Of a DNA stretch of 64,000 nucleotides, positions 12,468 to 64,000 are shown piece by piece. Every line of letters starts with the position of its first letter. The first letter of the stretch is position 1. Source of the DNA: Basidiobolus meristosporus CBS 931.73 (taxonomy: Eukaryota; Fungi; Basidiobolomycota); assembly GCA_002104905.1 (NCBI GenBank), contig MCFE01000057.1, positions 124,001-188,000 on the forward strand, written 5' to 3'. Made by a program: the position numbers and the translations under genes. Under the pieces are notes generated by a model, which saw only the letters and a list, made by a program, of their open reading frames with translations, did no database searches and was not told where the DNA came from.

Positions 12468-13823
12468 ATGTCCAAGTTCCAAGAAATCGAATCTCTGTTC
12501 ACTCTTTCCCCCGAAACCGTCAAGGATATCGTCGTTGATATCAAGGAAGATTTGCAAGAGGGCCTTATCTCCAAGGATCCCAACAATCTTGGCCAAATCC
12601 CTTCCTACGTCACCGCTCTTCCCACCGGAAAAGAAACCGGTACCTACCTCGCCATTGATCTTGGTGGTACCAACCTTCGTACTGCCGCCGTTACTCTTCT
12701 CGGAGACGGTCAAGTTGGTGTCAACATGAAGAAGTACCCCATCTCCATGGATATCCGTACCGGTGCCGGAGAAAAGCTCTTCGATTGGATTGCCGACTGC
12801 ACTGCTGATCTTCTCAACGATGCTACTCTTAACATTGGTACTGCCAACTTGCACATGGGTGTTACTTTCTCCTTCGCCCTCGACCAAACCGCCATCGATC
12901 GTGGTACCGTTGGTAAGATGGGTAAGGGTTTCAACCTTAGCGGTGTTACTGGTCATGACTTGAAGGACCTTCTTGAGGGAGGTTTCCATCGCAAGGGACT
13001 TAACAACATCATCGTTTCTGCTATCATCAACGATACCGTTGGAACCCTCGTCTCCCACGCCTATGCCTCCCCTACCACCAAGGTCGGTCTTATTCTGGCC
13101 ACTGGCACCAACGCTGCCTACCTTGAATCTGGTGAACAAATCGCCAAATACAAGGGTCCCGCTGTTGACAAGATGATCCTCAACACTGAATACAGCATCA
13201 TGGGTAAGAGACTCCCCATCACCAAGTACGACAAAGCTCTTGATGACGCAACCTTCACTCCTGGTTTCCAACGCCTTGAGAAGATGGTCTCCGGCATGTA
13301 CATGGGTGAAATCGCTCGTCGTATTTTGGTAGATCTCTGCGAAAGCGGTGAGCTTTTCAATGGCAAGCTTCCCCAAAACCTCGAGAAGCCCTATGAATTC
13401 AAGACTCTCTTCATGTCCACCATTGAGAGCGACCCCACTCCCGAGCACGCCAACATCCCCAGCCTTTTCGCCAAGCACTTCCCTACTGCTGAGCCCGTCT
13501 CCCTTGAGGACTGCAACAAGATCCACCGCATCTGTAAATTGATTGCTACCCGTTCTGCCAGCATTGTTGGTGCTGCCATTGCTGCCTTGTTGCTTCAAGC
13601 CAACGAAAAGACCGTGTTCTTGGATACCGATGAAGTCACCACTGTTGGTATTGATGGATCCGTCTACGAATTCTATCCTTACTTCACCCAACGTATTCGT
13701 CGTGCCATCGAGCTCGGTTTGGGCAAGGAACGTGCCGACCGTGTCAAGTTGGAACTCGCTCGTGATGGTGGCTGCATTGGCGCCGCTTTGATTGCCATGG
13801 TTGCCGCTACCAAGAAGAACTAA
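12468..13823 (+). CDS. Hexokinase-family sugar kinase, divergent, probably N-acetylglucosamine-kinase type; intronless with strong codon bias
   Basis: LAIDLGGTNLR, TFSF, NDTVGTL, TGTNAAY, LEKMVSGMYMGE and DGSVY identify the hexokinase family. MGKGF replaces WTKGF, NTEYS replaces NxEWG and DGGC replaces DGSG. Confidence 0.9.
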   Translation: MSKFQEIESLFTLSPETVKDIVVDIKEDLQEGLISKDPNNLGQIPSYVTALPTGKETGTYLAIDLGGTNLRTAAVTLLGDGQVGVNMKKYPISMDIRTGAGEKLFDWIADCTADLLNDATLNIGTANLHMGVTFSFALDQTAIDRGTVGKMGKGFNLSGVTGHDLKDLLEGGFHRKGLNNIIVSAIINDTVGTLVSHAYASPTTKVGLILATGTNAAYLESGEQIAKYKGPAVDKMILNTEYSIMGKRLPITKYDKALDDATFTPGFQRLEKMVSGMYMGEIARRILVDLCESGELFNGKLPQNLEKPYEFKTLFMSTIESDPTPEHANIPSLFAKHFPTAEPVSLEDCNKIHRICKLIATRSASIVGAAIAALLLQANEKTVFLDTDEVTTVGIDGSVYEFYPYFTQRIRRAIELGLGKERADRVKLELARDGGCIGAALIAMVAATKKN

Positions 13824-24900: not shown

Positions 24901-27305
24901 ATGCATTGGCCAAGATTTACATTGACAGCAACCATAACCCCGAGCAATTTTTGAGAGAAAACCAATTCTACGACCCCTTGCTTATCGGTAAATACTGCGA
25001 GAAGCGTGATCCTTATCTTGCTTATATTTCCTATGAGCACGGTCAATGCGATTTGGAGCTTGTTGGTATCACCAACGAAAACGATATGTTCAAACATCAA
25101 GCACGTTACTTGGTTAAACGCCGTGATCTAGACTTGTGGCAATATGTCTTGAATGCGGAGAATCCTCACAAGAGAGATTTGGTTGACCAAGTTGTGGGTA
25201 CCGCATTGTCCGAATCTCAAGACCCTGAAGAAGTTTCGGTTACTGTCAAGGCTTTCATGGCAGCTGATCTCCCCAACGAGTTGATTGAGCTCCTTGAGAA
25301 GATTATCTTGGAGAATTCTGCTTTCAGTGACAATAAGAATTTGCAAAACTTGCTTATTCTCACTGCGGTCAAGGCAGATAAAACCAAGGTCATGGATTAC
25401 ATTACTCGACTGAATAACTACGATGCTCCAGATATCGCGGAAATTGCCATCAGCAATGAGTTGTACGAAGAAGCATTCACCATCTACAAGAAGTATGATG
25501 TCAACACTAGCGCAATTGGTGTGCTGTTAGACAATATCGGTAGCATTGATCGTGGTTACGAGTTTGCTGAACGTTGTGATCAACCCGAAGTTTGGTCCAA
25601 ATTGGCCAAGGCACAGCTTGATGTCTTCCGAGTCAAGGATGCCATTGATTCCTATATTCGTGCACAAGATCCTACCAATTTCTTGGAGGTCATCAATGTT
25701 TCTTCTGAAGCTGACAAGTACGACGATTTGGTGAAATTCTTGCAAATGGCTCGCAAGCATACCAGAGAGCCTCTCATTGAAAGCGAACTTCTGTTTGCCT
25801 TCGCCAAGACCGAAAGATTGGCCGATTTGGAAGAGCTCCTCTCTTCACCAAATATTGCCAAGGTGCAAGTAATTGGTGATCGTTGCTTTGACAATGGAAT
25901 GTATGAAGCCGCCAAGATTCTTTATACCAATGTTTCTAACTGGGGTCGCCTCGCTACTACTTTGGTTCATCTTGGCGAATACCAAGCATCTGTTGACTGT
26001 GCTCGCAAGGCTAACAGCACCAAGGTCTGGAGAGAAGTTCACTCCGCGTGTATTGAACACAAGGAGTTCCGTCTCGCTCAAATTTGCGGTTTGAACCTGA
26101 TTGTCCACGCCGAAGAGCTTAACCAAATCATCCGTTTGTATGAAAACCAAGGATTTATTGATGAGTTGATGCAACTTCTTGAGGCCGGTCTCGGACTTGA
26201 AAGAGCTCACATGGGAATGTTTACCGAATTGGCTTGTATTTATGCCAAGTACAAGCCTGAGGTTATGATGGAGCACTTGAAGCTTTTCTGGTCCCGAATC
26301 AATATTCCCAAGGTCATCCGTGCTTGTGAGCAAGCACATATGTGGCCTGAGCTTGTCTTCTTGTATGTTCACTACGACGAGTATGACAACGCAGCCAACA
26401 CTATGATGAAGCGCTCCGCAGACGCTTGGGAGCACGCCAGTTTCAAGGATATCATCGTGAAGGTGACAAACCTCGAAATCTATTACAAGGCTCTTCGCTT
26501 TTATTTGGATGAGCATCCACTCCTTTTGAACGATTTGCTTGGTGCTCTCACACCTAGAATTGATCACACCCGTGTTGTTCAAATGTTCCGCAAGTCCGAT
26601 AACCTGCCCTTGATTAGATCCTACTTGGTATCTGTGCAAGAGACCAACAACCAAGCTATTAATGAGGCTTATCATGAGCTTCTTATTGAGGAGGAAGACT
26701 ACGAGGCCCTTAGACACTCCATTGAGCAACATTCAAACTTCGACAACATCGAATTGGCTCAAAAGCTTGAGAAGCACGAGCTTTTGGAATTCCGCAGAAT
26801 TGCGGCCCATTTGTACAAGGCCAACAAGAAATGGAAGCAGTCGATTTCTCTTTCCAAGGTTGATAAGCTCTATAGAGATACCATGGAGACCGCGTACGAA
26901 TCCAAGGATACCGAAACCTCCGAAGATCTTCTACGTTACTTCGTGGATATCGGCAAGCAAGAATGCTTCGCTGCTTGTTTGTATCTGTGCTACGATCTGC
27001 TTCGCCCTGACGTTGTCATGGAGTTGGCTTGGAGAGCTGGCTGGCAGGATTTTGCCATGCCATACTACATCCAGGTGGTTAGAGAGCTCTCTACTAAGGT
27101 CGAGATTCTTGAGAAACACGATCGTGAAAGATTAGAGAAGGATGCTGCTGAGAAGAAGCAGGCCATGGATGCGCCAATGATCAATCCTGGTGGGTTTGGT
27201 AACTCCCTCATGATTACAGCAGGCCCTGGAGGTATGATGGCACCCCAAGGAGGTATGGGGATGGGTACACCACAGATGGGTGGGTACAACATGTCGAATT
27301 ATTAA
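21941..27305 (+). CDS. CHC1: Clathrin heavy chain, several short 5' exons plus a final exon of about 4 kb
   Basis: [61 protein letters not shown]; CHCR repeats such as [20 protein letters not shown] and [12 protein letters not shown]. Confidence 0.99.
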
Positions 27306-33202: not shown

Positions 33203-36200
33203 ATGGGTTCAAACGGCACAATACCGTATGATCTAGTGACTCTTTCGTCACCCTCGGAGGATGATGTTACTCATGTCCTAGAGGACAACTTTGAACAAAA
33301 CAACACATATTTAAAGATCGGGGCCCACGTACTCCTCTCCCTGAATCACGGCCAAATATCCCCACGAAAGAGTGCTGAGTTGGAAGAATATATCAATGAT
33401 TTTAGAGATGCCCAGCCTACTTATGGCGATAGATTGAGGCCACACATATTCCAAACAGTCAGCCATGCCTACCTCGAGATGCGACGCACCGGTTACAACC
33501 AATCCATCGTATTCAGGTAATTGGGTGACATGATTCCAGAATATTCATGATGTCTGACATTTCTCTTTATCTAGCGGGGAGACCGGCAGTGGTAAATCCA
33601 CCAACAAATTCCTTGCCCTAGAAGCGTTGGGCAAGATAAGAGAGCCGTCTAAAAAGGAATCGCACGTCGTGAAGCTGATCACTAACGCGTGCAAGATCCT
33701 GGAAGCATTCGGGAACGCTGGAACGGTTAGAAATCCCAACGCCTCGCGGTTCGGAAGTTACATCGAGATTCAATTCAACGAGCGCGGTCGTATTCTGGGG
33801 TCCAAATTCTTGGATTACCTTTTGGAGAAGTCCCGGGTGACACAGCCGACCCACGGTGAGCAAAACTTCCATGTCTTCCACTACTTGCACAATGGGGCGT
33901 CCATCGACGAGAGGGTGCATTTCCATTTCGCCGATACCGCCGAGTTCTCCTACCTTCCTCAGAACTCCGCCTACATTAGAGAGGACGATGCAAGGAAGTT
34001 CCACGAGCTTCGTGACTGCATGAAGTCCCTTGGGCTTAACAAGAAATACCAGAACCAGATCTTTCGACTGTTGGCTGCTATCCTGCATCTGGGTAATCTC
34101 ACTTTCGTCGATGCGCACAACAAGAATCTCGAGGCGTCGTCTGTCAAGAATGTCGAAGTCCTGGATACGGTGGCGGAATTCCTCGGCGTTTCGACAGCAT
34201 CCCTCGAGAGTGTCTTGACCTACAAAACACAGCTGGTCAAAAAGGAGATGTGCACAATTTTCCTCGATGCAAAGCATGCCGAGATCCAGAGGGATAGCTT
34301 GGCAAGGGCTTTGTATTCCTTGTTGTTCAGTTGGATCGTGGAGTTTGTCAACACCAAGCTGTGCAGTGAGGAGCAAACGAACTTCATCGGTCTCGTGGAC
34401 ATGATGGGATTCCAAAACCGCTCGGTGGACTCCTTCAACCAGTTCTGCGTCAATTTCGCCAATGAGCGAATCCACAACTTCCTCAATCACCAGATATTCG
34501 AGTTGAACAACATCGATTATGAGGATCAAGGAATCGCAGTCCCCAATATTGCCTACTTCGACAACTCCTCATGTATCGATCTCATCATGAAACCGAAGAC
34601 CGGCCTCATCTCGATCATGGACAATCTCGCCAGCAAGTCGGAGAATGAGGTGTCGGACCAGGAGCTGCTCGAGGCTCTGGAGAACGCACAAAATAGCCAC
34701 GACAGCTTTATCAGTTTCCCGGGCGATTCGCACTCTGGATTTGCTATCCGGCATTATGCTGGCAAGGCCAGCTATTCAATCCAAGGATTCATGGAGAAGA
34801 ATACCGAAAACATCGGAACGGACTTCATCGACCTTTTCCGTGGTGGCTCGGACGTGAAACCTACTAGCAACTCCTTTATTGCCGGCCTGTTCTCCAACAA
34901 AACCGTTTCCTACCAATCGCATCCAAGAAACAATGCTACCATCGTGGGCGCCCAACAATCCGCCGCCCCCACAAGGAAGCCCTCCATGCGACGTACCAGA
35001 AAGAAAGACAGCAACAAAGAGTGCAGGGCCATGCAGTTCCAGCAGGCCGTGAGCGAGCTTATCGAAACTCTGGAGGAAACCACTCCCTGGTTTGTGATTT
35101 GCATCCAGCCCAATATCGAGGGGAACCCCAATCAGTTCGACTTCCATCATGTCAAGTCGCAAGTGCGGCGTCTGGGCCTGAGTCAGATTGCTGAACGCCA
35201 GCGTTTCGAATATACGTCGTCAGTCGACTACGATAGCTTTGTGAGACGCTACGGAAGTCATGTCGATTTGCAGGAGCCAGCGTCGCGGGAGGCAATGGAG
35301 CAGCTCCGAACGAACCTCGGTTGGTCGGAACGTGACATGATGCTTGGAAGCACCAAAGTATTTTTGAACTTTGCTGCTTGGAAATACCTTGAAGATCAGT
35401 TACGCGCTGCGGAAAATGAGGACAGATTGCGCCGTAAATCCACCGGTACAAACGTTGAGACTATGAGCCAAGCTGCCCCCTCCATTTTTACAAACAGCGG
35501 GACGGTAAATGAAAGTCGAGAATATTTCCCGGCCACGGGTCGTGTTTCTTCCCCTGGACCAGTGCCTCGGGAGTATCCGCTTTCATCCAACCCAGTGGAC
35601 AATCGGTCATTTTATAGCGGGGCCGAGTCCTACTACAGCGATGAGGATTACTACGAGCGGGAATCCAGTTCGATAGCCGGGACGGAGCCATATCCCCTCA
35701 AGCCGGTTGGGCTGCAGGAGGTCAAGAGGGAAGCAGAGGTATTTGATCCCAAGGAACACCAGGAGCTCAGCAAGCCTAGAAAAAGATGGTTGTGTTGCAC
35801 CTGGGCGTTGACATTCTGGATCCCCACATTTACCCTAAGTATGTGTGGTAGAATGAAGCGACCAGATGTTCAGATCGCTTGGCGTGAAAAGACCGCGTTA
35901 TGCATGATCATCTTCTTCCTATGTATTTTCGTCCTCTTCTTCCTTATCTTCTTTGGCCGACTTATCTGCCCCAGACAGTATGTTTATTCATCAACCGAAC
36001 TTGCAAGACATACATCAGCCGATAGCCCGTTCGTGTCCATTCGTGGAGAAGTGTTCACCATCAAAAACTTCGTCCACTACACCGTTCCGGCCTCGGCCAT
36101 CATCACGGAATATGCAGGCAAGGAAGTTGGCGATCTACTCTTTCCAATGCAGATCAGCATGGTTTGTGATGGGTATGATGGCCCGATCGATCCAGCGGTA

Positions 36201-38885
36201 GTTATGAACAACTACACCGATGTGAATCACAAGTATCACGATTTCCGTTATCACGTAATGGGGAACCAAATGACCAACTTCTATCAACACAATGTGATGG
36301 CATTCATGCGTGCCAAATATCTAGAGGGACAAATGGCCTATTCTACCCAAACCGTACGTGATTTTGGGCGAAAGGGAGAGTTCTGGGCCATCCTCGACAA
36401 CATGGTGTATGATTTGACTGCTTATGTTAACGGGCATGTGGGAACTCTATTCCCACCTGGAGCGCAGACGCCCAGGGTGAACACTCAGTTTCTGGATCCG
36501 TACCTAGTTGATTTGTTTAGGTACAACCTCGGGAGCGATATTACACATCGGTTCAATAATTTGTACCTCGATAAACCCGAACTTAAGCAGAAGATGAAGG
36601 TTTGTCTTCAGAACTTATTCTACAAAGGAGTTGTCGATACCCGAAACTCGCCACAGTGCAAGTTCTCGAATTACATCCTGCTGGCATGTACGATCTTCTT
36701 GGGCTCGGTGATCTTCTTCAAGTTCTTGGCCGCTCTGCAGCTTGGTTCTCGCCGTGAGCCCGAGGAACACGATAAATTCGTCATTTGCCAGGTGCCCTGT
36801 TATACCGAGGGCGAGGAATCCCTGAAAAACACCATCGACTCGCTAGCCGTATTGAAATATGACGACAAACGAAAGCTACTTTTCATCATTGCCGATGGTA
36901 TGATTATTGGTGGTGGTAACGACAAGCCCACGCCAAGAATTGTGCTGGATATCCTAGGTGTGGACGAAAGCGTGGATCCCAAACCAGTTGCCTACAAGGC
37001 CCTTGGTGAGGGAAACCAACAACTGAACATGGCCAAGGTTTATACCGGTCTGTACGAATGCTCAGGACACGTAGTGCCATTCATGGTGGTCGTCAAGGTC
37101 GGAAAGCCCAGTGAACGCTCCAAACCTGGAAATCGTGGCAAGCGTGACTCGCAGCTTATCATCATGAATTTCTTCAACAAGGTCCACTTCGACCGACCAA
37201 TGTGTCCTTTGGAGTTGGAGATGTACCACACGCTGAAGAATGTCATCGGTGTCGATCCATACTTCTACGAGTATGTCCTCATGGTGGATGCCGATACCAT
37301 TGTCATGCCCGATTCTCTCAACCGAATGGTGTCCTGTATGCTCAACGACAGCAAGATCATGGGTATTTGCGGTGAGACGGAGTTGTTGAACGGAAAGGCC
37401 ACCATCACCACCATGATTCAGGTCTACGAATACTTCATCTCTCATCATCTGGCCAAGGCTTTCGAATCCCTCTTTGGCTCGGTCACCTGCTTACCCGGTT
37501 GCTTCTCCATGTATCGTTTCCGAACTCCGGTTAAGGCGCAGCCCTTGCTGATCGCCGATTGCATTGTCAATGATTATTCCGAGAACAAGGTGGACACTCT
37601 TCACAAAAGGAATCTGTTGTCGTTGGGTGAGGATCGTTACCTGACCACGCTAATGTTGAAGCACTTCAACTACAACAAGATGACCTTCACACCGGATGCC
37701 AAGTGCAAGACCAACGCCCCAGATCAGTGGTCGGTCCTACTCTCCCAGCGTCGTCGTTGGATCAACTCCACGGTTCACAACCTGTTCGAATTGGTGTATC
37801 TACCCAGACTCTGTGGTTTCTGCTGTTTCTCTATGCGCTTTGTGGTCATGATCGATCTTATCTCCACGATGATCATGCCCATTCTATGCATCTACCTGGG
37901 CTACCTGATTTACTCCATTTGCACCGACACTTCCAACCTCCCACTCACCTCAATTATCCTGCTTGCCGCTATTTATGGCCTCCAGGTGATCATTTTCCTT
38001 GTCAAGCGACAATGGCAACACATCGGCTGGATGATCGTCTACTTGATCTCCCTTCCCATTTTCAGTTTCTTCCTTCCGGTTTATTCCTTCTGGCATTTCG
38101 ATGATTTCTCGTGGGGTAATACCCGTGTGGTTGTCGGGGAATCCGGAAAGGTCGCGCACGTCGCGACGGAGGAGAAGTTTGATCCTGCTAGCGTTCCTCT
38201 GAAGAAGTGGAGCGAGTATGAGCTGGAGAATTGGGAGATTGCCTCGCAGATGTCTGACTCCAAAGATTCTAGAGTGATTGGCTCCATGCACTCCGAGAAC
38301 CGTAGCAGAAGCCAAATCTCCCGAGTATCTCGCGCGGACGCACCATCGCCATATCAAAGCATGTCGACCCTGCCTAGGTATGGCTTCCCTGCGGAAGCAT
38401 ATTCTTCAAGGAACAATTCCCGCGAGAGATCCATGTCCCCAGGCTATGCAGGCCTGCCAAGATCCATGAGCCGTGCGACGTCCTATGATCGCGCCCCCAG
38501 CTCGAATCCCTACTCCACCGTCAATTCAAGCTCAGATATGAGGTTGCCAGTCAGAAGCTTCAGCTCATCGTCTTTGAATCCAAATAACCCATTCTCCAAC
38601 TATAACGGGGCCGCTATTCCTCCCGAAGCTGGGGAGTCTTATTTCCCAGAGCCGCAAGTGAATGTGTACCCAGCCTCCAATCCAAGCACCCCGGGCATTC
38701 CAAACCTTCCCAGTGACGAGGAGATCCTGCAAGAGGTCCGCACAATCCTATCTACGGCCGATCTAATGTCTATCACCAAAAAGCAAGTCCGTGATGAATT
38801 GACCCACTTCTTTGGAGTGGACATGACCATCCGAAAGGAGTATATCAACAACTGCATTGATATGATACTTCAAGGGCAACTGTAA
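33203..38885 (+). CDS. Chitin synthase with N-terminal myosin motor-like domain (class V type), cytochrome b5-like region and DEK_C domain; one coding intron near 33517-33572
   Basis: P-loop GETGSGKS, NPNASRFG, QFCVNFANE; catalytic motifs NRGKRDSQ, VDADT, CGET, LGEDRYLTT, QRRRW; C-terminal LPSDEEILQEVRTIL...TKKQVR. A likely 5'-UTR intron lies at 33103-33171 (GTAAGT...CTAAC...CAG). Confidence 0.97.
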
Positions 38886-39295: not shown

Positions 39296-42200
39296 CTAAT
39301 TTAAGGTACCGCGACAATGTTTCGAGCCGCAGAGGCAGGGGATCTTGTCGTCTTCAATGGGGAATTTATAGTCGTATGTGATTTCTTCGCCTTCTTCAAT
39401 GTCTCGCTTTGCGTAAATCACAATCTTCTTCTGGCCATCCACAGAGATGACTTTCGCATTGCAGTTGGGCTAATCAAAGGGTTTGCGGTCAATACGGATG
39501 TTATGAGCAACAATGATCAGCAACCATTTACTTACCGTGCAGCAATGGTTGATAAATCGGGCAATGTTCCCCATCTTTGTAGCATCGAATTACTGTATCC
39601 TCATCCACTCGAAACAAGTAGCTGCTTCCGATACCAGAACGCTCGTAGATCTTCTCTCGATGATCGGCGACTTTCTGTCGAATTATCTCCCCAATGTACT
39701 CTATCACCATGTCGTTCGCTTCGATCTTCTCCATGGCAAACAATCCCCAGTCATGAATAGGCGATTTAGCAAATTTGAGTTGCTTCTTGCGGACCTTGAG
39801 CTGGTTGAACTTGAACGTGTCCGAGTCCATGTTGGCTGATTTCTTGTGCAACTCCATGAGTCTTCGATGGTTGACACGGTTCATTCTTGATGTTACTTTC
39901 GATGTCCCGTTGGTACAGAATATCGCTTCTTGTTTTTGTGGTAAATACACTGATTTGGCTTCGGTCGGAATTCTATAAAAGCCCTCAGTTCTTGCGCTCC
40001 CGGTTGTATGAACTGGAAGCAGGCCTAAACAAGAGAGCCCATGCCCACTTAACTCGTTGATCTGTAAACCATACGCTCAACATAGCCTTACCTTTCTTGC
40101 GCTCCATTTCCAACTCATCCATAGCCGCTTTGCTCTTCTGCTCGTCCTCCCTAGCTTTGATGTTCTCCGCTTCAGAATGGTTCGGCTCTTGGTCACTCTC
40201 GTCGCTGTTGGGTCGTGTGCGCTTTCGTCCGACTTGGTTGTTGGGCCTCTTTCGTACACTTCGAGACTCCAACGGGCCGTGATCTGATTGTTCATCACTG
40301 GAATAGGTAAACTTGACAGAGTGGCGCTTTCGGATTGGCTTTCTTCTTTCGTTTTGAATATCACGACTTCTGCTGCCTCTTTCTTGGGCTTCCGATCTGA
40401 TGGACTGCGAACGAGAGCGTGATTTCGATACCTCATGGGTCGAGCTATCCGAGGAATAATGTACGGAAGGCTTGCCTCGAGATTCTTTACGAACACTGCG
40501 TGTCTGACGCTTCTTGCGCGAGCGGCGTTCGTAATCAGAATAGTCGGCGTCCGATAATTGATCTTCCGAATCACCCGTGTCCGAATGACGAGAGCGCTTA
40601 CGAAGCTTATTCTTCGTTTTGGATTCCCTTTCAGAAGCAGAATCCGAATAGTCCAGACTGCGTTTGCGACCGCGTCGTTTAATAGGGCGGCGGTGTGGCT
40701 TGTGCTTGGAAGGATGCTCAGGATCGGAATCATCAGAAACAATGAAATCATTTCGGTCGCTATCCGAGGTATCGGTGTCTTTGTCCCGATTCTCCTGTAA
40801 CTCTCGCAAGAATTTGTCGTGGTCCCCACCATCATCCTCGGTACTACTCAAGTAGTCGCGTAATCTCTTCTGCTGCAGTTTGCCCTCCACCTTCGCACCA
40901 CTGGACTTGGCTACTTTCTTCCGCTCAGCTAACACGGAGCTTGCTGAAAGAGAGGACTCGCTGTCACTGTAATGTCTCGAGTCTTTTTTGATTGATCGGC
41001 TAGGCTTGCTCTCTGAGGGTTTCCTTGCGTCGTCTGAATCATATTTGTGTGAACGTTTTGATTTGTCCGCTCGACTGTGTCGGGTGGGCATCATTCTTTC
41101 CCCTGACGATGAGGTTTTTTTCTTGAACCGAGGAAGACTGGCTATCCACGAGGACATGGCAGCAACCGGCTCGTTTTCTTTGCATGCAATGGTGAGGCCG
41201 CCACCGGTCAGATAAGAGAACGTACAGCGCAACAGAAGCTATTTAATCTTACCTTTAGCATTGAATTTGGCAATATCAGTGAAGTTATTTTCGTTTTTGA
41301 CTCGAGCCGTGGGGTGCTGCTGTTCAGAAGCTCTTGAATTGGTAGGCATGGCCTTTTTGCCAATCAGACCGTTCTCCCGTTCGACGGATGGGGATGGCTC
41401 TCCTTTGGAGTTCAACGAATCAGCACGAGTGCTGGATCGTCGAGAATTACCTTCTGGCTTGATGAAGTCATACATCAATGGGCTGATGACTCGGCTACGC
41501 AGGTCTTTCATGAAGACTTCGCATAGATCCTTGATGAGTAGGTGAATGGTACGCTTGGTGAGCTCCGCCTCATCCGCGACATCTTCGTTATAAATGTCTC
41601 TTTTGACCGGTTCTTGAGCGGGCTGTTCAATCTTTTTTGGTGGGGCGTTGCTTTCGGCCGTCCATTCCTTCTTCTCAGGTGGTTGTGAACTCAAGAAGCT
41701 GTCGTCTTTGATGCCCTGATATGCTAAGTGCAACTTGTATCCCATGATGCTTGTTTGATCCATAGCAGTCTGGCATCTCCGAGCTCGCTCTGCTGAAGAG
41801 AACTGTATGTGCCATCGATTGGTATCGAAATAAATCTGCAGAACGTCAATCTCTATTGTATCTATGTTACAAGAGAATACGCCAAAGCAATACCTTATCC
41901 GGGCCGAATCTATCAAAATTTTTCTTGACCTCTTCTAGAGATATTTCGGGGTACGGTAGATGTGACCGTGATATAGTAAGGCACGGCTTGAGAAGCTCAG
42001 GCAACCCTTCAAAGGGCAGCTCCTAAGGTGAATTCAGTTAGCTTGCTCCACTCTAATCAAAAGCGTGGGATTAACCATTACCATAAACCTAGATACGTGC
42101 CCGACTGGACTCATTGACGGAACAGGCGCTGCTGGCTCTCTATGCCAATGATCACCCCCGTGTCTATCACGCCACTCCGATGGTCGCAAGGGGGCTTTGG

Positions 42201-43755
42201 AATTGGCACCCCCGATGGGGGAATTGGTGTGATGGGTACCCAACAGGCGCGGCTGGATACCTTGAATAGGCTTTAGATTCATCAGATGTTATGCTGCGTT
42301 GGTCGAAAGAATCATTCCGAGATCGATGTCTAACGCCAACATCATGGTCCTCGGGAATTGCACCCTCCTCATCATCCTCGATCTCCCCATCCTCCATTCC
42401 GGATCTATTTGAGTTTGACTTACGCTCGGGGACAGATCCTCCTAAAAGATGTTGCTCCTCCGCCCCAGCAGAGTTAGAAGACATCGCATGGTGACTGCTG
42501 TAGCTTCCAGACCTCGAATGAGCGGTCCCTCTAGATGGGAAAATCTGCGACTCACCAGACCGAGGGCCGCCGGAGTCTGTAGGATACGGCTGCTCTGCGT
42601 GAATGATGGGTGAAGCCCCTTTACTTTCTTGGAATAGATGCTTGGTAGCATTTTCAACCGCTTCCTGCATCTTCGTTCCTATATCAAACTGGTTGAGACC
42701 ACTGACTTGAAAACATGACATAAACAAGGAGATATCAACCATCATCATCCAATTCAACTTTCACAATCGAATCACCTATCCTCCGACCGTTCCCTAGCTG
42801 CACTGCCCTCTTTGCCGCAGCGCTTGCGGCCCCTCCATGGCTTCCGCCGTCTTCAAACATTACTCTGGCAAGACCCAGACTGGCGCCTGTTATAGGACAC
42901 ATTTCTAGATGCACGTCAACAACCCCGCCATACGTCGAGAAATAGGTGCGAATATGAGCAGGGGTGGTTAGCAGAGAGAGCTGGGAAACGAAAACCGAGC
43001 TCGGCGGAGGTGGGCCCACAGAATTTTCATCATACTTGTGTTTCGAAGGGCATTAGAATGAAGGTTGTGGATACTGCATAACCTTGGAAAGCACAGCTAC
43101 CTCGTACTTGATCGCCTTTAAACAGGGCAGATACTTCTTTCTGCCTCTGGAGGTCGCACGACCATAAGCGTTCATAGACTTCCGCGGATCACTCAATTTG
43201 ATCGGCGGCTCCTATGTATTCAAAAGATGGATACGTCCCGCGGATGAGTGTCTGAGCCAGTATATAATACATTTTGACCTGCAGCATACAAACCTTTGGT
43301 GCTACCTCTCCACAAAACCGATAGATCACCTCATTTCCGGTCCGATGCTGAGAGGAGCTTAAAAAAGGATCGTATAGAACTTTCCAGTCACGTCTCTGTG
43401 AATGACCATTCGACGCGTCGGGGCGATTTGCAGCAATATGTTCAGACGTATGAGTAGCGCCGGGTTTCAGAGAACAGTATTCAGACTTTGAATCTGATTG
43501 AAAAAGATAACCATCGGTAACAAAGGCATCAGATAACTGGTGTATGCGAAAGGTATATATTGAAAGTGTTGCATAATTGTGGACAAGTCGGAGCAGCAAG
43601 AACAGACAGAAAAAGAGAACTACAAAAATGGTTCCAACCTGGCACTTCTTGAGGCATGCAGTATCGTAGGATAGACGTATGGGAATGGAAGGAAACTGAT
43701 AGAGCAAATAAACACGATTGAATCCTCTAAGATACGTTATGAAGCCAGCTAACAC
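39296..43755 (-). CDS. SET1: Histone H3K4 methyltransferase Set1 (COMPASS), multi-exon; two apparent +1 frameshifts; true start uncertain
   Basis: [13 protein letters not shown]1 ([14 protein letters not shown]...CPITGASLG), RRM2, n-SET (RMNRVNHRR), [56 protein letters not shown], post-[18 protein letters not shown]. Confidence 0.93.
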
Positions 43756-54868: not shown

Positions 54869-57800
54869 ATGGGTTCAACTGAACCCTACATATGTTCTGG
54901 TGCTGTGAACGCTCCCTCACAAAGAGGTACAATTTTGTTTTGGTACAGTTAAGCTAACACGAGCACTAAGAGTATTCTGTCAGTGAAATTCACTCAAACA
55001 ACCATCAGAACGTTGACAGAAGGTCCCTTTCTCACCTTGCATAATTCCGAGAACCATTTATACGCGCAAAATCAAACTTCAGATTTGCTGGAGTTCATAC
55101 AGGACCCGATCGCTCGCGATAAAGCCTTGCTCAAAGTGCCGCGTCAACAAGAGCATATCCTGTTTGATTTCCACTTGGAGGTTACACTACCCAATTTCAA
55201 AGTGTTGGCGTTGGTTCAATGTCCTACTGCGTTAGATGCAGCAAAATTGCTGGCAAAGATCGAGCCAAGTAGTGATAAGGTAGCAGCCGCTCCTGTCTAA
55301 ACCAACTGCCGCGTTAGAGCTGACCCTCTCTTCATTCATTAGATATACGAGCAGCAGGATATCTTTATCATTGATACACTGCCGATCAACGTTGTATCAA
55401 AATTCAGGTGGACTTGGCAATGGAGCTGCTCGCATGATCACCATAAAAATAGCAAAGGGTGTAGAGCAAATTTTATGGTAAGTAATCGTCCCATATCGGC
55501 CAACCCAATTGTACGAGTATCTAATAGACGCCAATGACATCTAGTTTGTAATATTTGACGTTCAGGCCAACACTTGTGAAGAGCAATTTCATTTCGATTT
55601 GTGGATGGAAAACAGCGGGACTCTCCCGGAGAGCAAGGCTTATCAGCTTAAGCGCACAGATTCCTCCGAATCCAACTACTCTTCAAGCTCCACTGGTGAG
55701 AATAATTTTGATCAGCGTAGGTCTGACAGATTGTCTCCATTGGCGGCGAAATTGGACAGCTATCAGTGGGATGTATTAAATTCCCCAGAAGAGAATGATG
55801 AATTCCCCCTGGAGAAGGAGCTTGCTCAGCCATTATCGTTGGACAGCCTGAGTATGGAGGAAGATGCATTGAAGCGAACGCAGAACCAGCTCCGTGGTCA
55901 GACCGAGCCATTCAATATCGATATCGTGGACTCTCCACTACTTCGGTACAAGATCCAGCATTCGGAAAAGAAAGTCACCGCCCTCAAAAACGAAATCAAG
56001 AAACTATTAAAAGCCATTGCTGTTTATGATGAAGTCTACCAGCAGCAGCAAAGGGCCAACAACGATCTACTGGACGCCATCAAGTCAGTGAAGCTGTTAG
56101 AGCCTATCGTCAAATTTATAGCCCCAGTTTTCCAACAAATCACTGAAGGTCGACAGATGTTACAGAAGCAACTCCGCACTATGATCTTTTATCCCTTACA
56201 GCGTGTGTACGAGAAAGATATCAAGTCGGTCGAGTATAAAACCAAGGAGTTCATGCGAGAGGCAGAGGAATTCTACCACACCGAGGCTAAACATCTCTCC
56301 ATCAAGAATGATCGCGACAGGTCGCGAAAGCATGTAAGCTCTGATCAGAAATACGACAAGAAACGCAATCTTTTCGAGCAGAAAATGCTCGAGTTCTACT
56401 CATTCACTCACGAGCTCACCGAGGGCCCTAGAGAGGAGGAGCTCCTCTTGTGCTTTGTTGGGTTTGCACAGAGATGCTTTGAACATATTCGAACAGCCAA
56501 CGAGGTAGTTCACCAGCGCGGGTTGGAACTCAATGAGATTATGGGCTACTTGAAGAATCAAGCGGACGTTGTTGTTGAGCAAAGAAAGCTGATTGAGGAG
56601 AAGCAGAGACATTTAGGAGAGTTGATCTCCGCATCCGAGAGCGCGATTTCTTCCAGCAAGTCAGAAAATAGCCGTAATTTTGTTTCGCTGATGCGTTCCA
56701 AATCATCGGCCATTCGCGACAAACTCACTAATCGCATGGTGGGGGTTCGTGATTTGGGGTCGTTCAATGCGGAGCAAGCATCGTCTGCCGGACGGCATAA
56801 AGAGGGCATATTGTACTCACCAAACCGACATAGAACACCAAATCTGGAGAGTTCATGGCAGAGCAACTGGTGCGTCATATCCAAGGGCCAATTCTCAGAA
56901 ATCGTCAACTGGAAGAAAAAGCCGGACGCCCATAAGGCGTCGATAAGTTTAAAGCTTGCCTCAGTGAGGCAGCTTCCCGATTCTGAACGGAGGTTTTGCT
57001 TTGAGTTGGTGACGCTACAAGGAAGCAGAGTCTATCAAGCACTTTCCAACGAGGACATGATTGATTGGATGAACGTTCTCAAGAACGCCATCGAATCGCA
57101 GCTGAATGGGACTGGTTCTTCTCCTGATCTGCGATCCTTGGCCATCCCCGGGGACGATACTGTAGCAGCAAGGAGATCCGAGGATTTTTCCGACGACTAC
57201 GTAGAGTCTAGTTTAATAACTGCATTCAGGACTGACCCCAGTAACCGCTATTGCGCTGACTGCGGCTCCAAAGGACCTGAGTGGTGCTCAATCAATCTTG
57301 GAATCTTGCTTTGTATTGGTAAAGTCAGACTTGCTCACTATCGTTGAATACATGGCTAACTTGGTTTGTGCAGAATGCTCTGGGGTTCATCGCAGCCTAG
57401 GAACACATATCTCTAAGATCCGGTCACTCACACTAGACAACTCGTTCACCCCCGACCTAATCGATATGGTAAGGAGTGTAGGGAATCGGATGGCAAACTC
57501 GATCTGGGAGGCGGTGTTGACGGTGAAAAAGCCGGTGAATAGTGACAGCAGAGATGTCAAAGCTGCTTTTATTAGAGCGAAATACGTGGAGCGCCGGTTC
57601 CTGGATTATTCAGTCACGCAATCGCACAAGGCTGCCTCTACGTCCTGTTTGTTGCAGCCAGATGAAAATCCAGTCAAAGCCCTGGCAACAGAGCTGCTGT
57701 TCAAGGCTATCGAAAGCAATGATATCCGAAACGTGATCCGAGCCTTTGCCCTTGGCGCAGATATCAATTATCGTAAGTTCGGTGATTGCCCGGAGGAGGC

Positions 57801-58350
57801 GATGCAGATGACATACGCAGCATTCCTGGAGACACCAGTTGATGATGAGGGTGTTACTCCACTTCAGGTTGCACTGTCCATGCCATTAAGCTTGCACGCA
57901 ATCGCAAGTTTGACAAGTCAGAACCATAATGGAACTTCAACTTCAACTCGTAAATCTCTGGATGATTTGAATGTGAGCATAGCGACGTTCCCTACTGCCG
58001 AGTTTCTGATCCAAAATGGCGCTGACATTAATCAATCCGCACCGCAGAGCGGGTTTACACTACTGCATATTGCTACGATCAAGGGGAATCCTGGTGCAGT
58101 TCGATATCTACTATCAAAAGGCATAAATCCAAGAACTCTCGATCATTATGGAAAGACTGCCTACGTTTGGTCTATCCTGACTGGTGATCTATGTGGGCAA
58201 CTGTTACGTGATGCTTTGGCTAGCAATCATCAGACCAGCGGCTTGAGCTCCTCTACGTCTCTGGTGAGGTACCCCGAAAGTCAAGCAATTGCTGAGAATG
58301 CTCGGTCAAGTAAGCTAGAGACTATGGGGGTAGCACAACTATTTAAATAG
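54869..58350 (+). CDS. Arf GTPase-activating protein with BAR, PH, ArfGAP and ankyrin domains (ACAP/Age1-like), multi-exon; start approximate
   Basis: DSPLLRYKI (BAR entry); PH HKEGILY...WCVISKGQF...SERRFCFELVT...RVYQALS; ArfGAP CADCGSKGPEWCSINLGILLCI|ECSGVHRSLGTHISKIRSLTLD; ankyrin TLLHIATIKGN. Confidence 0.92.
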
Positions 58351-58847
58351 CAGCTGGTCATTTTAATCTTGTTAATGTCGCATGTTTCTAATCCCTGTGA
58401 TTAATGTTTCCTTGCATAGTGCTGTGTGGCAATACTGCCGTTTTTAGATATAATCCTTCCTTTAATCGCTCATAACTCACTCTCCTTTTCCAACTTTCTC
58501 TGTTCACTTGTGTATATTCAGGAGAGCTAACAGGAGCTCCCATGTAACAATAAAGAAACTCGAATTGTATTAATTCATGTCGATAAGTGTATGTGACTGA
58601 GAGAGAACGAAGAAGCCCTACGAAGGGATATATACATCATGAGTGTAATGCTGATTTCGCTGCATGCAAAGGCCCTGTTACTCGGTATAAATTAGTTCGA
58701 AGGACAGTTCGATACAATTGTAGTTGATTAACATACTCTCCCCATGCTGGTATCGCAACGATTCTTGAATCTTTGTCAATAAGATATATATGGGATTCAG
58801 AATGAACCTTTATTTAATTGCTTGAGACTATAGTCATAGAGCAACAT

Positions 58848-59099
58848 CTACCAGCAGCGACCAAAACCGCTCTTCTTGTTGCAGCATGCCTGGAAGGTGT
58901 TCACGTTACTGCCTTCCTTGATGCCTTCACAGTTGCCGTTGCCTCCATTGAACTCGCCCTTGCAGCATGAGCTGGTGTCACTCCACTCGTTGCAGACACA
59001 TGCCTTGCATCCCTTGGAGTAGTTGTTGCATTGTCTTGCGGCATCGATTAGGCTGGCGCCGAGGACCATGGACAGAAGGGCGATGTAGGTGAAGCGCAT
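58848..59099 (-). CDS. Secreted cysteine-rich peptide, copy 1 (83 aa; about 20-aa signal peptide, 10 Cys)
   Basis: MRFTYIALLSMVLGASLIDA-ARQCNNYSKGCKACVCNEWSDTSSCCKGEFNGGNGNCEGIKEGSNVNTFQACCNKKSGFGRCW*; TATAAAA at 59157-59163. The true start is the ATG at 59099, not the longer ORF-track start. Confidence 0.93.
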   Translation of the reverse strand: MRFTYIALLSMVLGASLIDAARQCNNYSKGCKACVCNEWSDTSSCCKGEFNGGNGNCEGIKEGSNVNTFQACCNKKSGFGRCW

Positions 59100-60232
59100 T
59101 GTACTTGTATCAGGTGAAGCTGAGGAATATAACGAAAATACACATTCTACAGCGGCTTTTATAATAGATGGTGTGCCGGATATCTCAGCAGTTCCCCGGT
59201 TGTAGTGAGTGGTGGAGTTCCCAGGACAATAGTAAAATATACTATGCACGCCCTCTCGCTACCAAAAGTGATCGCAAGGAATCACAGGCACAATGGGCTT
59301 GTACTAACACATGGATTCGTATACCAGGTACAAGATCCATATTTTGGAGGTCCCGCCTGAGGTATAGCCGATACCGGGCTCACACTTGGTTTCACATATG
59401 GCCAGCATTAATGGTTCCTGGGAAATCAAGATCGGCCTGTTTGCCTCTAAAATGTGCGCAAGAAAAGTCAAGACCAATCGCTGTAAATGAAGGTGCATGT
59501 GTTTGTACAAGGCTCGAAGCTCTCATTTGGGATATGAGGTCATCCATGGCCGTGACTTCTGGGCTGACTGAATCCGTACACTTATGTCCGGTCAATAAGG
59601 AATCCAACATCGTCTAACTAGTACCTGTTGCTAATCTCGAATAATATCCAACAGCTGTAGCTACTAGTTTTCCCTCATGCATGTGCACCTTTTGATATTC
59701 GTAACCTACTACATAAAGTCAGAATCTACTTATGTTATTGTAACACATGAGGTATCTTGTTTCATAAATAGCATGCTGTGTTGCAGTTTGGATTTTATTT
59801 ATGGAAATGATGGGCAATTTGACTCATCACTCACCCAGATTGCGGGCTAAATAGAGATATTAAATCATATTCCATAATCAGCCCATGACTCACAGATTCA
59901 CCGTTGTAGAGTGTGGATTTGGTTTGGAGGCTTTACAAAGATTCACATTTGACTGTTTCCTGAGAATGGTTTCTGATAGATTGACAAGTAATAAAGAGCT
60001 CGGGTGTCTCTTTATATCATCTTTCATACTTCATGGCAAATACTAACCCCTCGCCCTCCATTGGAAAGTTTATGAAAATAGAATTGTATTCCCCCTTTAC
60101 CAAATCGCAATTCACAGGATTTCGATTAGAAATAAATCAGGGACTAGTGTAATTCGAAGGCCATAGCGATTATCCGAGTTCATGGTTGAATATTTATTTT
60201 ATTTACTTGGAGCCTTAGCCGTAAAGTAGCAT

Positions 60233-60484
60233 TTACCAGCAACGGCCAAAGCCGCTCTTCTTGTTGCAGCATGCCTGGAAGGTGTTCACGTTACTGCCTT
60301 CCTTGATGCCTTCACAGTTGCCGTTGCCTCCATTGAACTCGCCTTTGCAACATGAGCTGGTGTCACTCCACTCGTTGCAGACACATGCCTTGCATCCCTT
60401 GGAGTAGTTGTTGCATTGTCTTGCGGCATCGATTAGGCTGGCGCCGAGGACCATGGACAGAAGGGCGATGTAGGTGAAGCGCAT
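60233..60484 (-). CDS. Secreted cysteine-rich peptide, copy 2 (identical protein)
   Basis: Same 83 aa; TAA stop; silent differences only; TATATAAG upstream. Confidence 0.93.
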   Translation of the reverse strand: MRFTYIALLSMVLGASLIDAARQCNNYSKGCKACVCNEWSDTSSCCKGEFNGGNGNCEGIKEGSNVNTFQACCNKKSGFGRCW

Positions 60485-61651
60485 TGTACTTATATCAGGT
60501 GAAGCTGAGGAATATAGTGAATATATTCTCAACTGACAGCGGCTTATATAGAGATACAAGGCTCAGGATCTTGATTTACATCGACCGTTTATGATTGCTA
60601 AGTGGATGGTACTTTGCCCTAATATTTTTTTGTACTACAACTGCTTGTAGCTACATGTATTGCAATATAAAGTGGAGATAATACATTAGTAGCGTAAGCT
60701 TTTCCTGCTTCATATATGAACAAAGTGACTATTTCTCTATATAGAGTAACCTACAGTGTTACCATCTATACGAAAATCATTGGCCCCTCAAGGGCCCGTT
60801 TCAAGAAGTTCTTTATTAATCCATCTTAATCTGTTCGCTTTCATGCAGTAAGCATCAATCGTTTGCTCAAGTAGCACTACCAGCAATCATTTATATGCAG
60901 ATTGTGAAATACAACCGGCAGTAGCGGTTGTTATCATGCGGAATATTTTCACGCGAGGCAATTCCAGATTGTGTAGAGAATGCTGTTAGTAAGGTACAAG
61001 TACCGAGATGTTTGGGTCCAATAAGGTAGATCGTTACGAGTTGAATTCCTTGTACTCACAATAACTGTAGTGTTTCAAAAACAACTCGGAATAAACACGT
61101 TGAGATAATGGTTATGACGTAAAATGGTGCAAAGTCATACAAATCTACTTGCTTGTTGAATTTGTATTGATCAACAGAGAACGTGACGTCAAAAGCAAGC
61201 CTGTGCGGGTTTGCTTAAGTAAATGAATAGAATAGTACAGACAATCCTACTCGAAAGAGGGCTAAAATCTGCAAATCATTGCTAACTTACATATCCAATT
61301 GATTCCTCTCATGAGAACGGCTTCACAAAATCGGGATGCCCAGGTTAGATAACAAGCAGTTTCAGTATTGCGATATACCTTACTTAAATACCATCCTGAC
61401 ATAGATTGTACTTCACGTAATATCCATAAATAACACACCGTGCTCCATATACACCGAATAGAATCTTCATCGACAATCTTAATTCAACCCGAGCTATTCG
61501 AAAAATACTAAAATAATAAGAAATACCCTCTGTTGACGTAGTACTTTAATGCAGTGGTGATAGCAACATATTGGTATCAAATATGAATTGAAAACCACTG
61601 AAGGGGCTTGATTTATTCGTAGGACTTGACTCATAAACCCTAGAGCTATAT

Positions 61652-61903
61652 CTACCAGCAGCGACCGAAACCGCTCTTCTTGTTGCAGCATGCCTGGAAG
61701 GTGTTTACGTTACTGCCTTCCTTGATGCCTTCACAGTTGCCGTTGCCTCCATTGAACTCGCCTTTGCAACATGAGCTGGTGTCACTCCACTCGTTGCAGA
61801 CACATGCCTTGCATCCCTTGGAGTAGTTGTTGCATTGTCTTGCGGCATCGATTAGGCTGGCGCCGAGGACCATGGACAGAAGGGCGATGTAGGTGAAGCG
61901 CAT
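61652..61903 (-). CDS. Secreted cysteine-rich peptide, copy 3 (identical protein)
   Basis: Same 83 aa; upstream region nearly identical to that of copy 1. Confidence 0.93.
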   Translation of the reverse strand: MRFTYIALLSMVLGASLIDAARQCNNYSKGCKACVCNEWSDTSSCCKGEFNGGNGNCEGIKEGSNVNTFQACCNKKSGFGRCW

Positions 61904-63088
61904 TGTACTTGTATCAGGTGAAGCTGAGGAATATAACGAAAGTACACATTCTACAGCGGCTTTTATAATAGATGGTGTGCCGGATATCTCAGTAGTTCCC
62001 CGGTTGTAGTGAGTGGTGGAGTTCCCAGGACAATAGTAAAATATACTATGCACGCCCTCTCGCTACCAAAAGTGATCGCAAGGAATCACAGGCGCAATGG
62101 GCTTGTACTAACACATGGATTCGTATGCCAGGCACAAGGTCCATATTTTGGAGGTCCCGCCTGAGGTATAGCCGATACCGGGCTCACACTTGGTTTCACA
62201 TATGGCCAGCATTAGTGGTTCCTGGGAAATCAAGATCGGCCTGTTTGCCTCTAAAATGTGCGCAAGAAAAGTCAAGACCAATCGCTGTAAATGAAGGTGC
62301 ATGTGTTTGTACAAGGCTCGAAGCTCTCATTTGGGATATGAGGTCATCCATGGCCGTGACTTCTGGATTGACTGAGCCTCTACATCTCTTGCCCATAAAA
62401 ATTGCGCTATATATTATTTGGCCTTCCTGGATATTTTGATCGTAAGTTACTATATACAGGTGTGGTTTAGGAATAACTTGTATTAGTTTTCACAACCATA
62501 CATGTATCATTTGATATTCACAACTTATGTTGCATATATATTTCGATATAACAATATATGTGTAACGCCAAAGTTATTACTTGATAATTCACTAAACACA
62601 TACTATGTTGCAGTTTTAGCTCCAAATATGGAAAAGATATGCGTGCGTGACACACCTAGCATGTGAAATATATCCATATTCTAGGCAAACTGGAGGCCAA
62701 ACATAATGATCTCACGATTCACAGATTGATGATCATAGAACGCTGCGCTGGTTTTGAGGCCTTACAAACAAACAAATTTGATCAATTCCCAGAAATTGTA
62801 CCTGGTTACATACTCTGGCAGTGCTTTCGGATGAACCAATATGTAATCATGGGCTCTTTTACTTCTAAGAATTGCCAACCCAGCAGATATTCTTACTCTA
62901 CTGAACATACTGGACTTCCAATCCTTCGCGCCCATGTTCAATTTATAAATGTTTTCCCATATATTGAGAATCACAGAGGCTTGATCTGAATTAAACCGAA
63001 GTTAAGCATATTTCCCAGTTATAGGGATTATACTAGAGATTTATAAATATTTATTTTGTTTCTTGGAGCCTTGGCGATAGAGCAATAT

Positions 63089-63340
63089 CTACCAGCAGCG
63101 ACCAAAACCGCTCTTCTTGTTGCAGCATGCCTGGAAGGTGTTCACGTTACTGCCTTCCTTGATGCCTTCACAGTTGCCGTTGCCTCCATTGAACTCGCCT
63201 TTGCAACATGAGCTGGTGTCACTCCACTCGTTGCAGACACATGCCTTGCATCCCTTGGAGTAGTTGTTGCATTGTCTTGCGGCATCGATTAGGCTGGCGC
63301 CTAGGACCATGGACAGAAGGGCGATGTAGGTGAAGCGCAT
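63089..63340 (-). CDS. Secreted cysteine-rich peptide, copy 4 (identical protein)
   Basis: Same 83 aa; TATATAAG upstream as in copy 2. Confidence 0.93.
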   Translation of the reverse strand: MRFTYIALLSMVLGASLIDAARQCNNYSKGCKACVCNEWSDTSSCCKGEFNGGNGNCEGIKEGSNVNTFQACCNKKSGFGRCW

Positions 63341-64000
63341 TGTACTTGTATCAGTTGAAGCTGAGAAATGTAGGTAGCATATATCGAAATGAAAGTAGCT
63401 TATATAGGGATACGATATCAGTCGCTGTGGCTCATTTTGGACACGTAGTACGACGTCAGACTACCCGGAGCATATCCAGCCCTTCTCTAGTACTACAGCA
63501 GCATATTCGAGTAGCAGCATGTATCTAAGTTTATTGATCTATGTGGTGGATATAATATACTGGTAGTATCTTGCTCCCGTGTGCGGGAAAAGCTACCACT
63601 TGACAGCATAAACCTACTAATATAGAACTAACCAGCTATGAGTATATCGTTTACTTTTCAGGAATCCGTGCCACCACTATTTGCACAGATTTCGAGGTGC
63701 TTTCCGCAATAGCAAATTTGATCAAGATATTTTACTACGAAAATATGTATATTCACTCGGATTTGATGGCCAGTGTCATGCGGACACCTCAAGTGACTTA
63801 TTAACACGACACCAATTATAAATCAAGTATTTATTGATGCATCCTGTAAACACATTAACAATTACCTATGCTGTGTAAGCCCTAGTTATAATATACGATG
63901 ACAAATGAGTCACCAAACATTATGCTGCTCTGTATTGCATAGAATACATATTTATAGCCAACTTGAGCTATGTCGCTACAAATTAAATAATCAGTGCCCA

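Follow-up and report, generated by a model that had tools for sequence, protein, structure and literature searches.

We report an array of four genes for a small, secreted, cysteine-rich peptide at positions 58848-63340 of a 64,000-nt stretch of fungal DNA, referred to here as the window. The source record of the exact protein is assembly GCA_002104905.1, contig MCFE01000057.1, of Basidiobolus meristosporus CBS 931.73, and the contig that hosts the array is nuclear and 195 kb long; an earlier note on this DNA, made from its letters, had placed it in an early-diverging fungus, which the source bears out. We lean towards reading the array product as a secreted single-chain antimicrobial with a KP6-type fold, made from chromosomal genes. 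As judged by structure prediction, the peptide family, which is new at the sequence level, would belong to the KP6-like structural kind. Antimicrobial and most plausibly antifungal activity is suggested by analogy. Such a role fits a cationic peptide with a signal sequence and no partner gene, and a family that occurs in saprotrophs and a soil animal.

The four open reading frames (ORFs) of the array all lie on the minus strand, are intronless and unbroken, and encode identical 83-aa precursors, as their coordinates and translations confirm for the reading given in the earlier note. With stop codons included, the coding sequences (CDSs) occupy 58848-59099 (copy 1, which adjoins an ArfGAP gene), 60233-60484 (copy 2), 61652-61903 (copy 3), and 63089-63340 (copy 4), with start-to-start distances of 1385, 1419, and 1437 nt. 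Copies 1, 2, and 3 are called in GCA_002104905.1, which lists only three 83-aa genes here; copy 4, with its mature peptide at 63092-63280, is intact and uncalled, an annotation gap that we found by tblastn. Nine nucleotide sites vary among the four CDSs, all of them third positions (eight synonymous, one within the stop codon), and there are no nonsynonymous differences. The upstream ORF extensions of copies 1-3 begin at GTG or TTG and are unlike each other, so we take the common ATG as the start. A tblastn search of the window and of 6.5 kb past its end found no fifth copy; four is therefore the full count. The locus spanning window-equivalent positions 50233-70484 holds exactly four copies, and the array ends within the window.

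The precursor opens with a basic residue, a hydrophobic stretch of ∼16 residues, and a small-residue motif ending at Ala20. This motif fits the −3/−1 rule and so points to cleavage after Ala20; an x-(E/D)-A motif before the mature part is kept in all homologues. Residues 1-20 are thus probably a signal peptide, in agreement with the length of about 20 aa proposed before, with a cleavage site that we infer from these features, and residues 21-83 probably make up a mature 63-aa peptide with 10 Cys. We number the mature peptide from Ala21 of the precursor as residue 1. Its 8 Lys/Arg and 5 Asp/Glu residues give the net charge of +3 that had been estimated. The Cys residues, at precursor positions 24, 31, 34, 36, 45, 46, 57, 72, 73, and 82, reproduce exactly the previously described spacing C-X6-C-X2-C-X-C-X8-CC-X10-C-X14-CC-X8-C, and three landmarks pointed out at the same time are likewise present, namely Thr22 four residues before Cys26, Gly35-x-Cys37, and Phe49 four residues before Cys53, each invariant in a 13-member alignment. 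All 10 Cys are invariant in the 27 sequences examined, 3′ truncated or mis-modelled entries excepted. The sole dibasic pair of the precursor (KK at residues 75-76) is not conserved among homologues.

Relatives were sought among 5.8 billion proteins with a word-indexed search, among 1.84 billion cluster representatives with an exhaustive run of phmmer, and with a sequence profile. These searches gave one small family, present in Basidiobolus, in Mortierellomycota, in the springtail Folsomia candida, and on a few environmental contigs. The homologue of B. ranarum is 82% identical to the window peptide, and those of Mortierellomycota, at 57-69% identity, come from Mortierella, Podila, Linnemannia, Gamsiella, Entomortierella, Gryganskiella, Lunasporangiospora, and Haplosporangium. 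The protein databases yielded no member from Mucoromycotina, Glomeromycotina, other Zoopagomycota, or Dikarya, but such absence is weak evidence given the under-annotation of small ORFs, of which copy 4 is an example. Every named member is annotated “hypothetical protein”, a Pfam scan of the window protein and 16 members at E ≤ 10 returned nothing relevant, and we found no literature on this peptide family, all of which agrees with the earlier note, which did not recognise it as a described gene. Neither phmmer nor a profile search against all PDB sequences gave a match at E ≤ 10. The link to KP6 is therefore drawn from predicted structure alone.

Several members deserve separate mention. B. 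ranarum also has four tandem copies, ∼1.05-1.25 kb apart, and when the two Basidiobolus arrays are compared at the nucleotide level only the CDS aligns, at ∼80%; the ArfGAP and retroelement proteins from around the B. meristosporus array have no match on the 15-kb B. ranarum contig. Linnemannia zychae (JAAAHV010000514.1) has two convergent copies ∼1.4 kb apart, the second of which is apparently unannotated (L003:11681-11932, minus strand) and is the Mortierellomycota sequence nearest Basidiobolus in a neighbour-joining tree. Folsomia candida has two genes (Fcan01_16483 and Fcan01_16486). Read directly, the homologue on its 4.9-Mb scaffold (LNIX01000011.1), which lies between animal-type genes, consists of one uninterrupted exon (L004:7969-8231) whose last four residues, just before a stop codon, match those of the fungal proteins; the annotated 159-aa model (OXA49097.1) therefore looks over-extended. 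That model splices past the stop of the ORF, and a second paralogue (OXA49102.1) is on the same scaffold.

Other matches were set aside. A 245-aa prediction from a 958-nt ENA environmental contig starts as a family member and continues into a signal-peptidase-like segment (PF10502) and an Ala/Arg-rich tail; either the contig or the gene call is probably chimeric. A 3256-aa match (E 1.2e-9, in 22 stretches) is a Bacteroidota SprB-repeat protein whose 16-residue motif, with 8 of 16 residues identical, recurs 22 times, and we rejected it as non-homologous. A viral origin was also rejected. A scan of IMG/VR turned up no relative. The sole match of the window model among viral structures, BFVD A0A7G7S0H7, is an unnamed 120-aa protein (E 0.49, TM 0.58/0.33) and is uninformative.

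The genes are under strong purifying selection. Between B. meristosporus and B. ranarum, the synonymous divergence (dS) is 1.2-2.3, the nonsynonymous divergence (dN) ∼0.09-0.10, and dN/dS 0.04-0.09; among the B. ranarum paralogues the corresponding values are 0.2-0.7, 0.02 or less, and 0.00-0.04; and among the window copies dS is 0.06-0.11, with dN and dN/dS both 0. By these values, with dS among the B. ranarum paralogues reaching 0.7, the copies are not merely recent duplicates. Copies within one Basidiobolus species are more alike than copies between species, which points to concerted evolution or to independent amplification.

The fold was predicted twice. Model 1 is an AlphaFold2 model of the mature window peptide, built with a 13-sequence alignment (mean predicted local distance difference test score, pLDDT, 82.4; predicted template modelling score 0.66), in which strands at residues 13-16, 29-31, 36-38, and 59-62 and helices at 19-25 (H1) and 44-54 (H2) follow in the order E13-16, H19-25, E29-31, E36-38, H44-54, E59-62. 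Model 2 is of the full precursor of the Linnemannia elongata homologue, which is 59% identical; its mature part has pLDDT ∼80 and the same element order, with β2 reduced to a bridge, and its residues 1-27 lie outside the fold with pLDDT < ∼50. In the description by de Guillen et al. 2025, the KP6 fold packs a pair of helices against one side of an antiparallel sheet of four strands and has two right-handed split β-α-β crossovers (PMC12382754); the sheet order is β4-β1-β3-β2, with a β2-β3 hairpin (PMC12382754, PMC12018790). By prediction, both of our models have the β-α-β-β-α-β order that characterizes this fold. The most conserved surface element of the family is the β2-β3 hairpin with its tight Gly/Asn turn, a candidate interaction site.

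We compared both models with PDB chains using Foldseek (the template modelling scores, TM, are Foldseek values and not those of TM-align). For model 1, compared with 350,542 chains at E ≤ 10, the best match is the KP6 β chain 4gvb_B (E 1.2, probability 0.47, TM 0.57/0.50, root-mean-square deviation 3.7 Å over 65 columns), and the second and last within the threshold is an AVR-Pik chain (TM 0.44/0.40, probability 0.06). For model 2, the three best are the KP6 α chains 1kp6 (E 0.35, probability 0.82, TM 0.53/0.56) and 4gvb_A (E 0.78, probability 0.69, TM 0.51/0.55, root-mean-square deviation 2.9 Å) and the KP6 β chain 4gvb_B (E 0.78, probability 0.57, TM 0.49/0.54); matches below these have probability 0.08 or less and TM 0.41 or less, and most are ferredoxin-like domains (PII, ACT, NikR, HMA). 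Superposition on the KP6 chains is sequential and covers 64-75 columns with a Foldseek TM of ∼0.5 or more, by which a KP6-type strand order and crossover handedness are implied. The published FHAT inventory of KP6-like proteins used as its filter TM > 0.5 to KP6 α or Zt-KP6-1 (PMC12382754); model 2 exceeds this value for KP6 α (1kp6 and 4gvb_A), and model 1 matched KP6 β only. The earlier note had named an unrelated fold as the outcome that would tell against KP6, and no knottin, defensin, or hydrophobin is among the fold matches of either model.

The positions of the Cys residues can be compared as well. The characteristic KP6 disulfides join β1 to H2 and H1 to β3 (PMC12382754). In mature numbering, Cys14 and Cys16 of the window peptide are in β1, Cys25 in H1, Cys37 in β3, and Cys52 and Cys53 in H2, all of them family-invariant. 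The published inventory found KP6-like proteins in Ascomycota and Basidiomycota only, with none in animal-pathogenic fungi, and KP6-like folds are already known as widespread in Dikarya (PMC12382754). We found no literature linking KP6 to Mortierellomycota, Mucoromycota, or Basidiobolus, and the predicted KP6-like fold in early-diverging fungi and a springtail is apparently new, the first outside Dikarya.

Among characterized proteins, the viral toxin UmV-KP6 (1KP6, 4GVB) shares with the window peptide the β-α-β-β-α-β order, the small secreted disulfide-rich chain, and Cys in the elements that bear the helix-to-sheet disulfides. The differences are several. UmV-KP6 chains have 74-79 aa and the window peptide 63 aa; the toxin is encoded by a double-stranded RNA virus, whereas the window gene is chromosomal and lies amid housekeeping genes; KP6 α and β are cut from one preprotoxin, whereas the window precursor is a single domain with no conserved dibasic site; and KP6 α has a hydrophobic N-terminal helix (PMC12382754) where the window peptide, with its 10 Cys, has a Cys-bearing N-terminal arm. 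As a chromosomal, single-domain product with neither a conserved processing site nor the N-terminal hydrophobic helix, the window peptide falls outside the viral KP6 system of two subunits. In UmV-KP6 an α/β pair is what kills sensitive Ustilago cells, by a mechanism that is possibly pore-forming, and the single-chain Zt-KP6-1 inhibits fungal growth (PMC12382754). Like the window peptide, Zt-KP6-1 of Zymoseptoria tritici (6QPK) and KP6 groups 2 and 3 are chromosomal, single-chain, and secreted, with no partner subunit, and Zt-KP6-1 thus offers what appears to be the best functional analogy; only two helix-to-sheet disulfides are described for it, compared to the up to five possible in the window peptide. 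KP6 group 1 (SIX5, AvrLm10A, AvrLm6) consists of small secreted Cys-containing proteins of the same predicted fold class, and its effectors act in plant cell-to-cell transport (PMC12018790). Group 1 genes are almost always head-to-head with a second effector gene, whereas the window copies are head-to-tail with no recognisable partner.

Hydrophobins are another point of comparison, being small, secreted, Cys-rich, and often multi-copy, with two CC doublets. Their eight-Cys pattern, C-CC-C-C-CC-C, has two Cys between the CC doublets, whereas the window peptide has one. The 16 members scanned gave no hydrophobin Pfam match at E ≤ 10, and the window peptide is a predicted α/β sandwich with no hydrophobin structure among its fold matches. 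Hydrophobin, defensin, and knottin readings were accordingly rejected on the Cys pattern, the lack of Pfam matches, and the fold-search results.

The mechanism that we propose would run as follows. Each of four intronless transcription units would encode the same secreted peptide, and the four copies may raise the amount made. Removal of the signal peptide after Ala20 would release a 63-residue, mildly cationic (+3) domain whose 10 Cys could form up to five disulfides. This domain would fold as a compact split β-α-β sandwich of KP6 type, with a four-stranded antiparallel sheet and two helices on one face, and its 12-residue N-terminal arm, which carries Cys4 and Cys11, would take the place of the hydrophobic N-terminal helix of KP6 α. 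In each CC doublet, one Cys would contribute to a core helix-to-sheet disulfide and the other may pin the N-terminal arm. The peptide would act as a single chain in the manner of Zt-KP6-1 rather than as an α/β pair, and its role would be that of an antimicrobial, most plausibly one active against fungi, that is secreted for interference competition in habitats such as soil, litter, dung, and gut.

A number of results weigh against a KP6-fold antimicrobial or would suit a different account. The claim of a KP6 fold in the earlier note stands insofar as KP6 chains are the top PDB matches of both models, and falls short in that their Foldseek E-values (0.35-1.2) are not significant; a match to Zt-KP6-1, to which that note had also pointed, did not appear, as 6QPK is absent from the Foldseek results of both models. 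A TM of ∼0.5 is weak evidence at a chain length of ∼63 residues, both models were built on one shallow alignment of 13 sequences, and the sequence searches linked the peptide to none of the KP6 chains and to none of the Pfam families. The KP6 topology is itself ferredoxin-like, as are the lower matches, so the likeness could be convergent. Identity of 57-69% across phyla together with very strong purifying selection is unusual for arms-race toxins or effectors, and such conservation would also fit a conserved physiological ligand or a structural role. It is our main reason for keeping in view a disulfide-stapled ferredoxin-like mini-protein that converged on the KP6 shape and is not a toxin. 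It might instead be a conserved extracellular ligand or signal, inhibit an enzyme, or be produced in bulk for the cell surface or spore coat. We consider this explanation possible if somewhat doubtful. It would also suit the identical proteins across copies, the near-invariance of the β2-β3 hairpin across phyla and in the springtail (as expected for a conserved binding partner), the housekeeping neighbourhood of the array, and a GC content at third codon positions (GC3) of 0.71 compared to 0.51-0.63 in neighbouring genes, which hints at abundant expression. Yet KP6 chains top both fold searches with a clear gap to other folds, Cys are found in all four elements that bear KP6-type disulfides, the hydrophobin Cys pattern and Pfam model are unmatched, and the gene has been kept in an animal genome, which is hard to square with a fungal wall or developmental role.

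The earlier note had also allowed for a host-directed toxin, and we regard as improbable an effector or toxin used by Basidiobolus against the amphibian or reptile gut or insects, and by Mortierellomycota against plants. The small size, secretion, and Cys-richness of the protein would suit such a role in a genus that lives in association with animals and can be opportunistically pathogenic (PMC9391592), as would the action of the KP6-fold proteins SIX5 and AvrLm10A in hosts (PMC12018790). That part of the claim is opposed by purifying selection with no sign of diversification, by the occurrence of a 57-69% identical family in many saprotrophic Mortierellomycota and a springtail genome, and by the lack of a paired neighbouring effector gene of the kind found in the host-acting KP6 group 1. 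Its presence in saprotrophic soil fungi and a soil animal speaks more for a defence molecule of general use than for an effector tied to one host. Least credible of all is that the ORFs are non-functional, chance open frames in a repeated non-coding or transposon-derived segment. Copy 4 is uncalled in the public annotation and a LINE-like retroelement lies a few kb past the array, but the CDSs carry eight synonymous changes and no nonsynonymous change and have been kept while the spacers diverged, the Cys are invariant in intact homologues from two phyla of fungi and from an animal, and dN/dS is far below 1. These selection and conservation data effectively refute it.

The distribution of the family raises the question of gene transfer. 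The neighbour-joining tree of the ∼62-residue domain unites the Basidiobolus sequences in a clade (78% bootstrap) that it places amid several lineages of Mortierellomycota paralogues, and the springtail sequences form another clade with one environmental sequence (89%); the deep nodes of this tree have no support. The patchy range, combined with identity of 57-69% between phyla, suggests horizontal transfer. More tentatively, a KP6-fold antimicrobial gene may have been exchanged between Mortierellomycota and Basidiobolus, members of different fungal phyla, and passed from fungi to springtails, there to be adopted for the animal’s own defence, although we would give this scenario less than even chances. 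In springtails the gene would have stayed intact, kept its signal peptide, and been duplicated. The springtail homologue amid animal-type genes is a candidate fungus-animal gene transfer.

If the KP6-fold reading is true, the known range of the fold would come to include early-diverging fungi, among them a genus responsible for mycoses of humans and animals, as well as an animal genome. Most of the KP6 literature deals with effectors of plant pathogens, which evolve fast; the family described here is, on the contrary, unusually conserved, and could thus show more clearly what role the fold had ancestrally, probably an antimicrobial one. If transfer occurred, the family would illustrate in compact form how genes for small peptides are exchanged between soil organisms. 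There is also a lesson for annotation, in that public records omit or mis-model one of the four copies as well as several homologues.

Each copy of the array has its own regulatory signals. A TATA-like box on the minus strand starts 64 nt upstream of the ATG in copy 1 (59157-59163) and 64-66 nt upstream in copies 2, 3, and 4 (60544-60550, 61961-61967, and 63400-63406), a position that alignment shows to be matched in all four B. ranarum copies. The leader of ∼45 nt is near-identical in every array copy. A minus-strand poly(A)-signal-like hexamer of the form A(A/T)TAAA lies 30 nt past the stop in copy 1 (58813-58818) and 30-35 nt past it in copies 2, 3, and 4 (60198-60203, 61612-61617, and 63050-63055). 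With a TATA-like box, a leader, and a hexamer of its own and no introns, each copy is therefore taken to be an independent transcription unit. The peptide CDS has a GC3 of 0.71 and a GC content of 0.54, the spacers are ∼41-43% GC, and the neighbouring housekeeping ORFs compared (12468-13823, 23247-27305, and 33627-38885) have GC3 of 0.51-0.63; the high GC3 may be the codon bias of a highly expressed gene.

Outside the CDS and ∼40-70 nt of flank, the spacers are mostly unalignable between copies. There are two longer pairings. Copy 1, with its CDS and ∼470 nt upstream (58837-59571), is 98% identical to copy 3 (61641-62375) over a common 735 nt, and copy 2, with its CDS and short flanks (60189-60557), is 92% identical to copy 4 (63046-63413) over ∼369 nt. 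The repeat period within the array is 2804 nt. These pairings point to duplication of a two-gene unit of ∼2.8 kb, the simplest history suggested by the sequence.

Beside copy 1, the array is flanked by a BAR-PH-ArfGAP-ankyrin gene on the plus strand (55599-58350). A few kb past copy 4, near the contig end and outside the window, is a 917-aa ORF resembling a long interspersed nuclear element (LINE), with reverse-transcriptase and endonuclease domains (L008:1308-4061, window-equivalent ∼66.4-69.2 kb); no genes are called in that 7-kb stretch. The array spacers contain no second Cys-rich ORF and have no Pfam or Rfam match that would indicate a partner or immunity gene, and their ORFs are without Pfam match, consistent with the earlier observation that no β-subunit partner or immunity gene is nearby. 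The remainder of the window looks like any other stretch of fungal chromosome. Its housekeeping genes encode clathrin heavy chain, a myosin-motor chitin synthase, hexokinase, and an isocitrate/isopropylmalate dehydrogenase, and there are also genes for a kinase, a cyclin, an AAA ATPase, and ribosomal protein S8.

Three further features of the window are recorded here. A long ORF run on the minus strand (39985-42757) encodes a low-complexity protein rich in Ser, Arg, Lys, and Asp, with no Pfam match, and it coincides with the strongest AT skew of the window (−0.20, at 40001-42000). A 419-aa ORF on the minus strand (12432-13691) is antisense to the hexokinase gene (12468-13823, plus strand) and is most likely a compositional by-product, not a gene. 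Finally, a 39-nt unit is perfectly duplicated in tandem at 11355-11432, the only tandem repeat in the window scoring ≥80.

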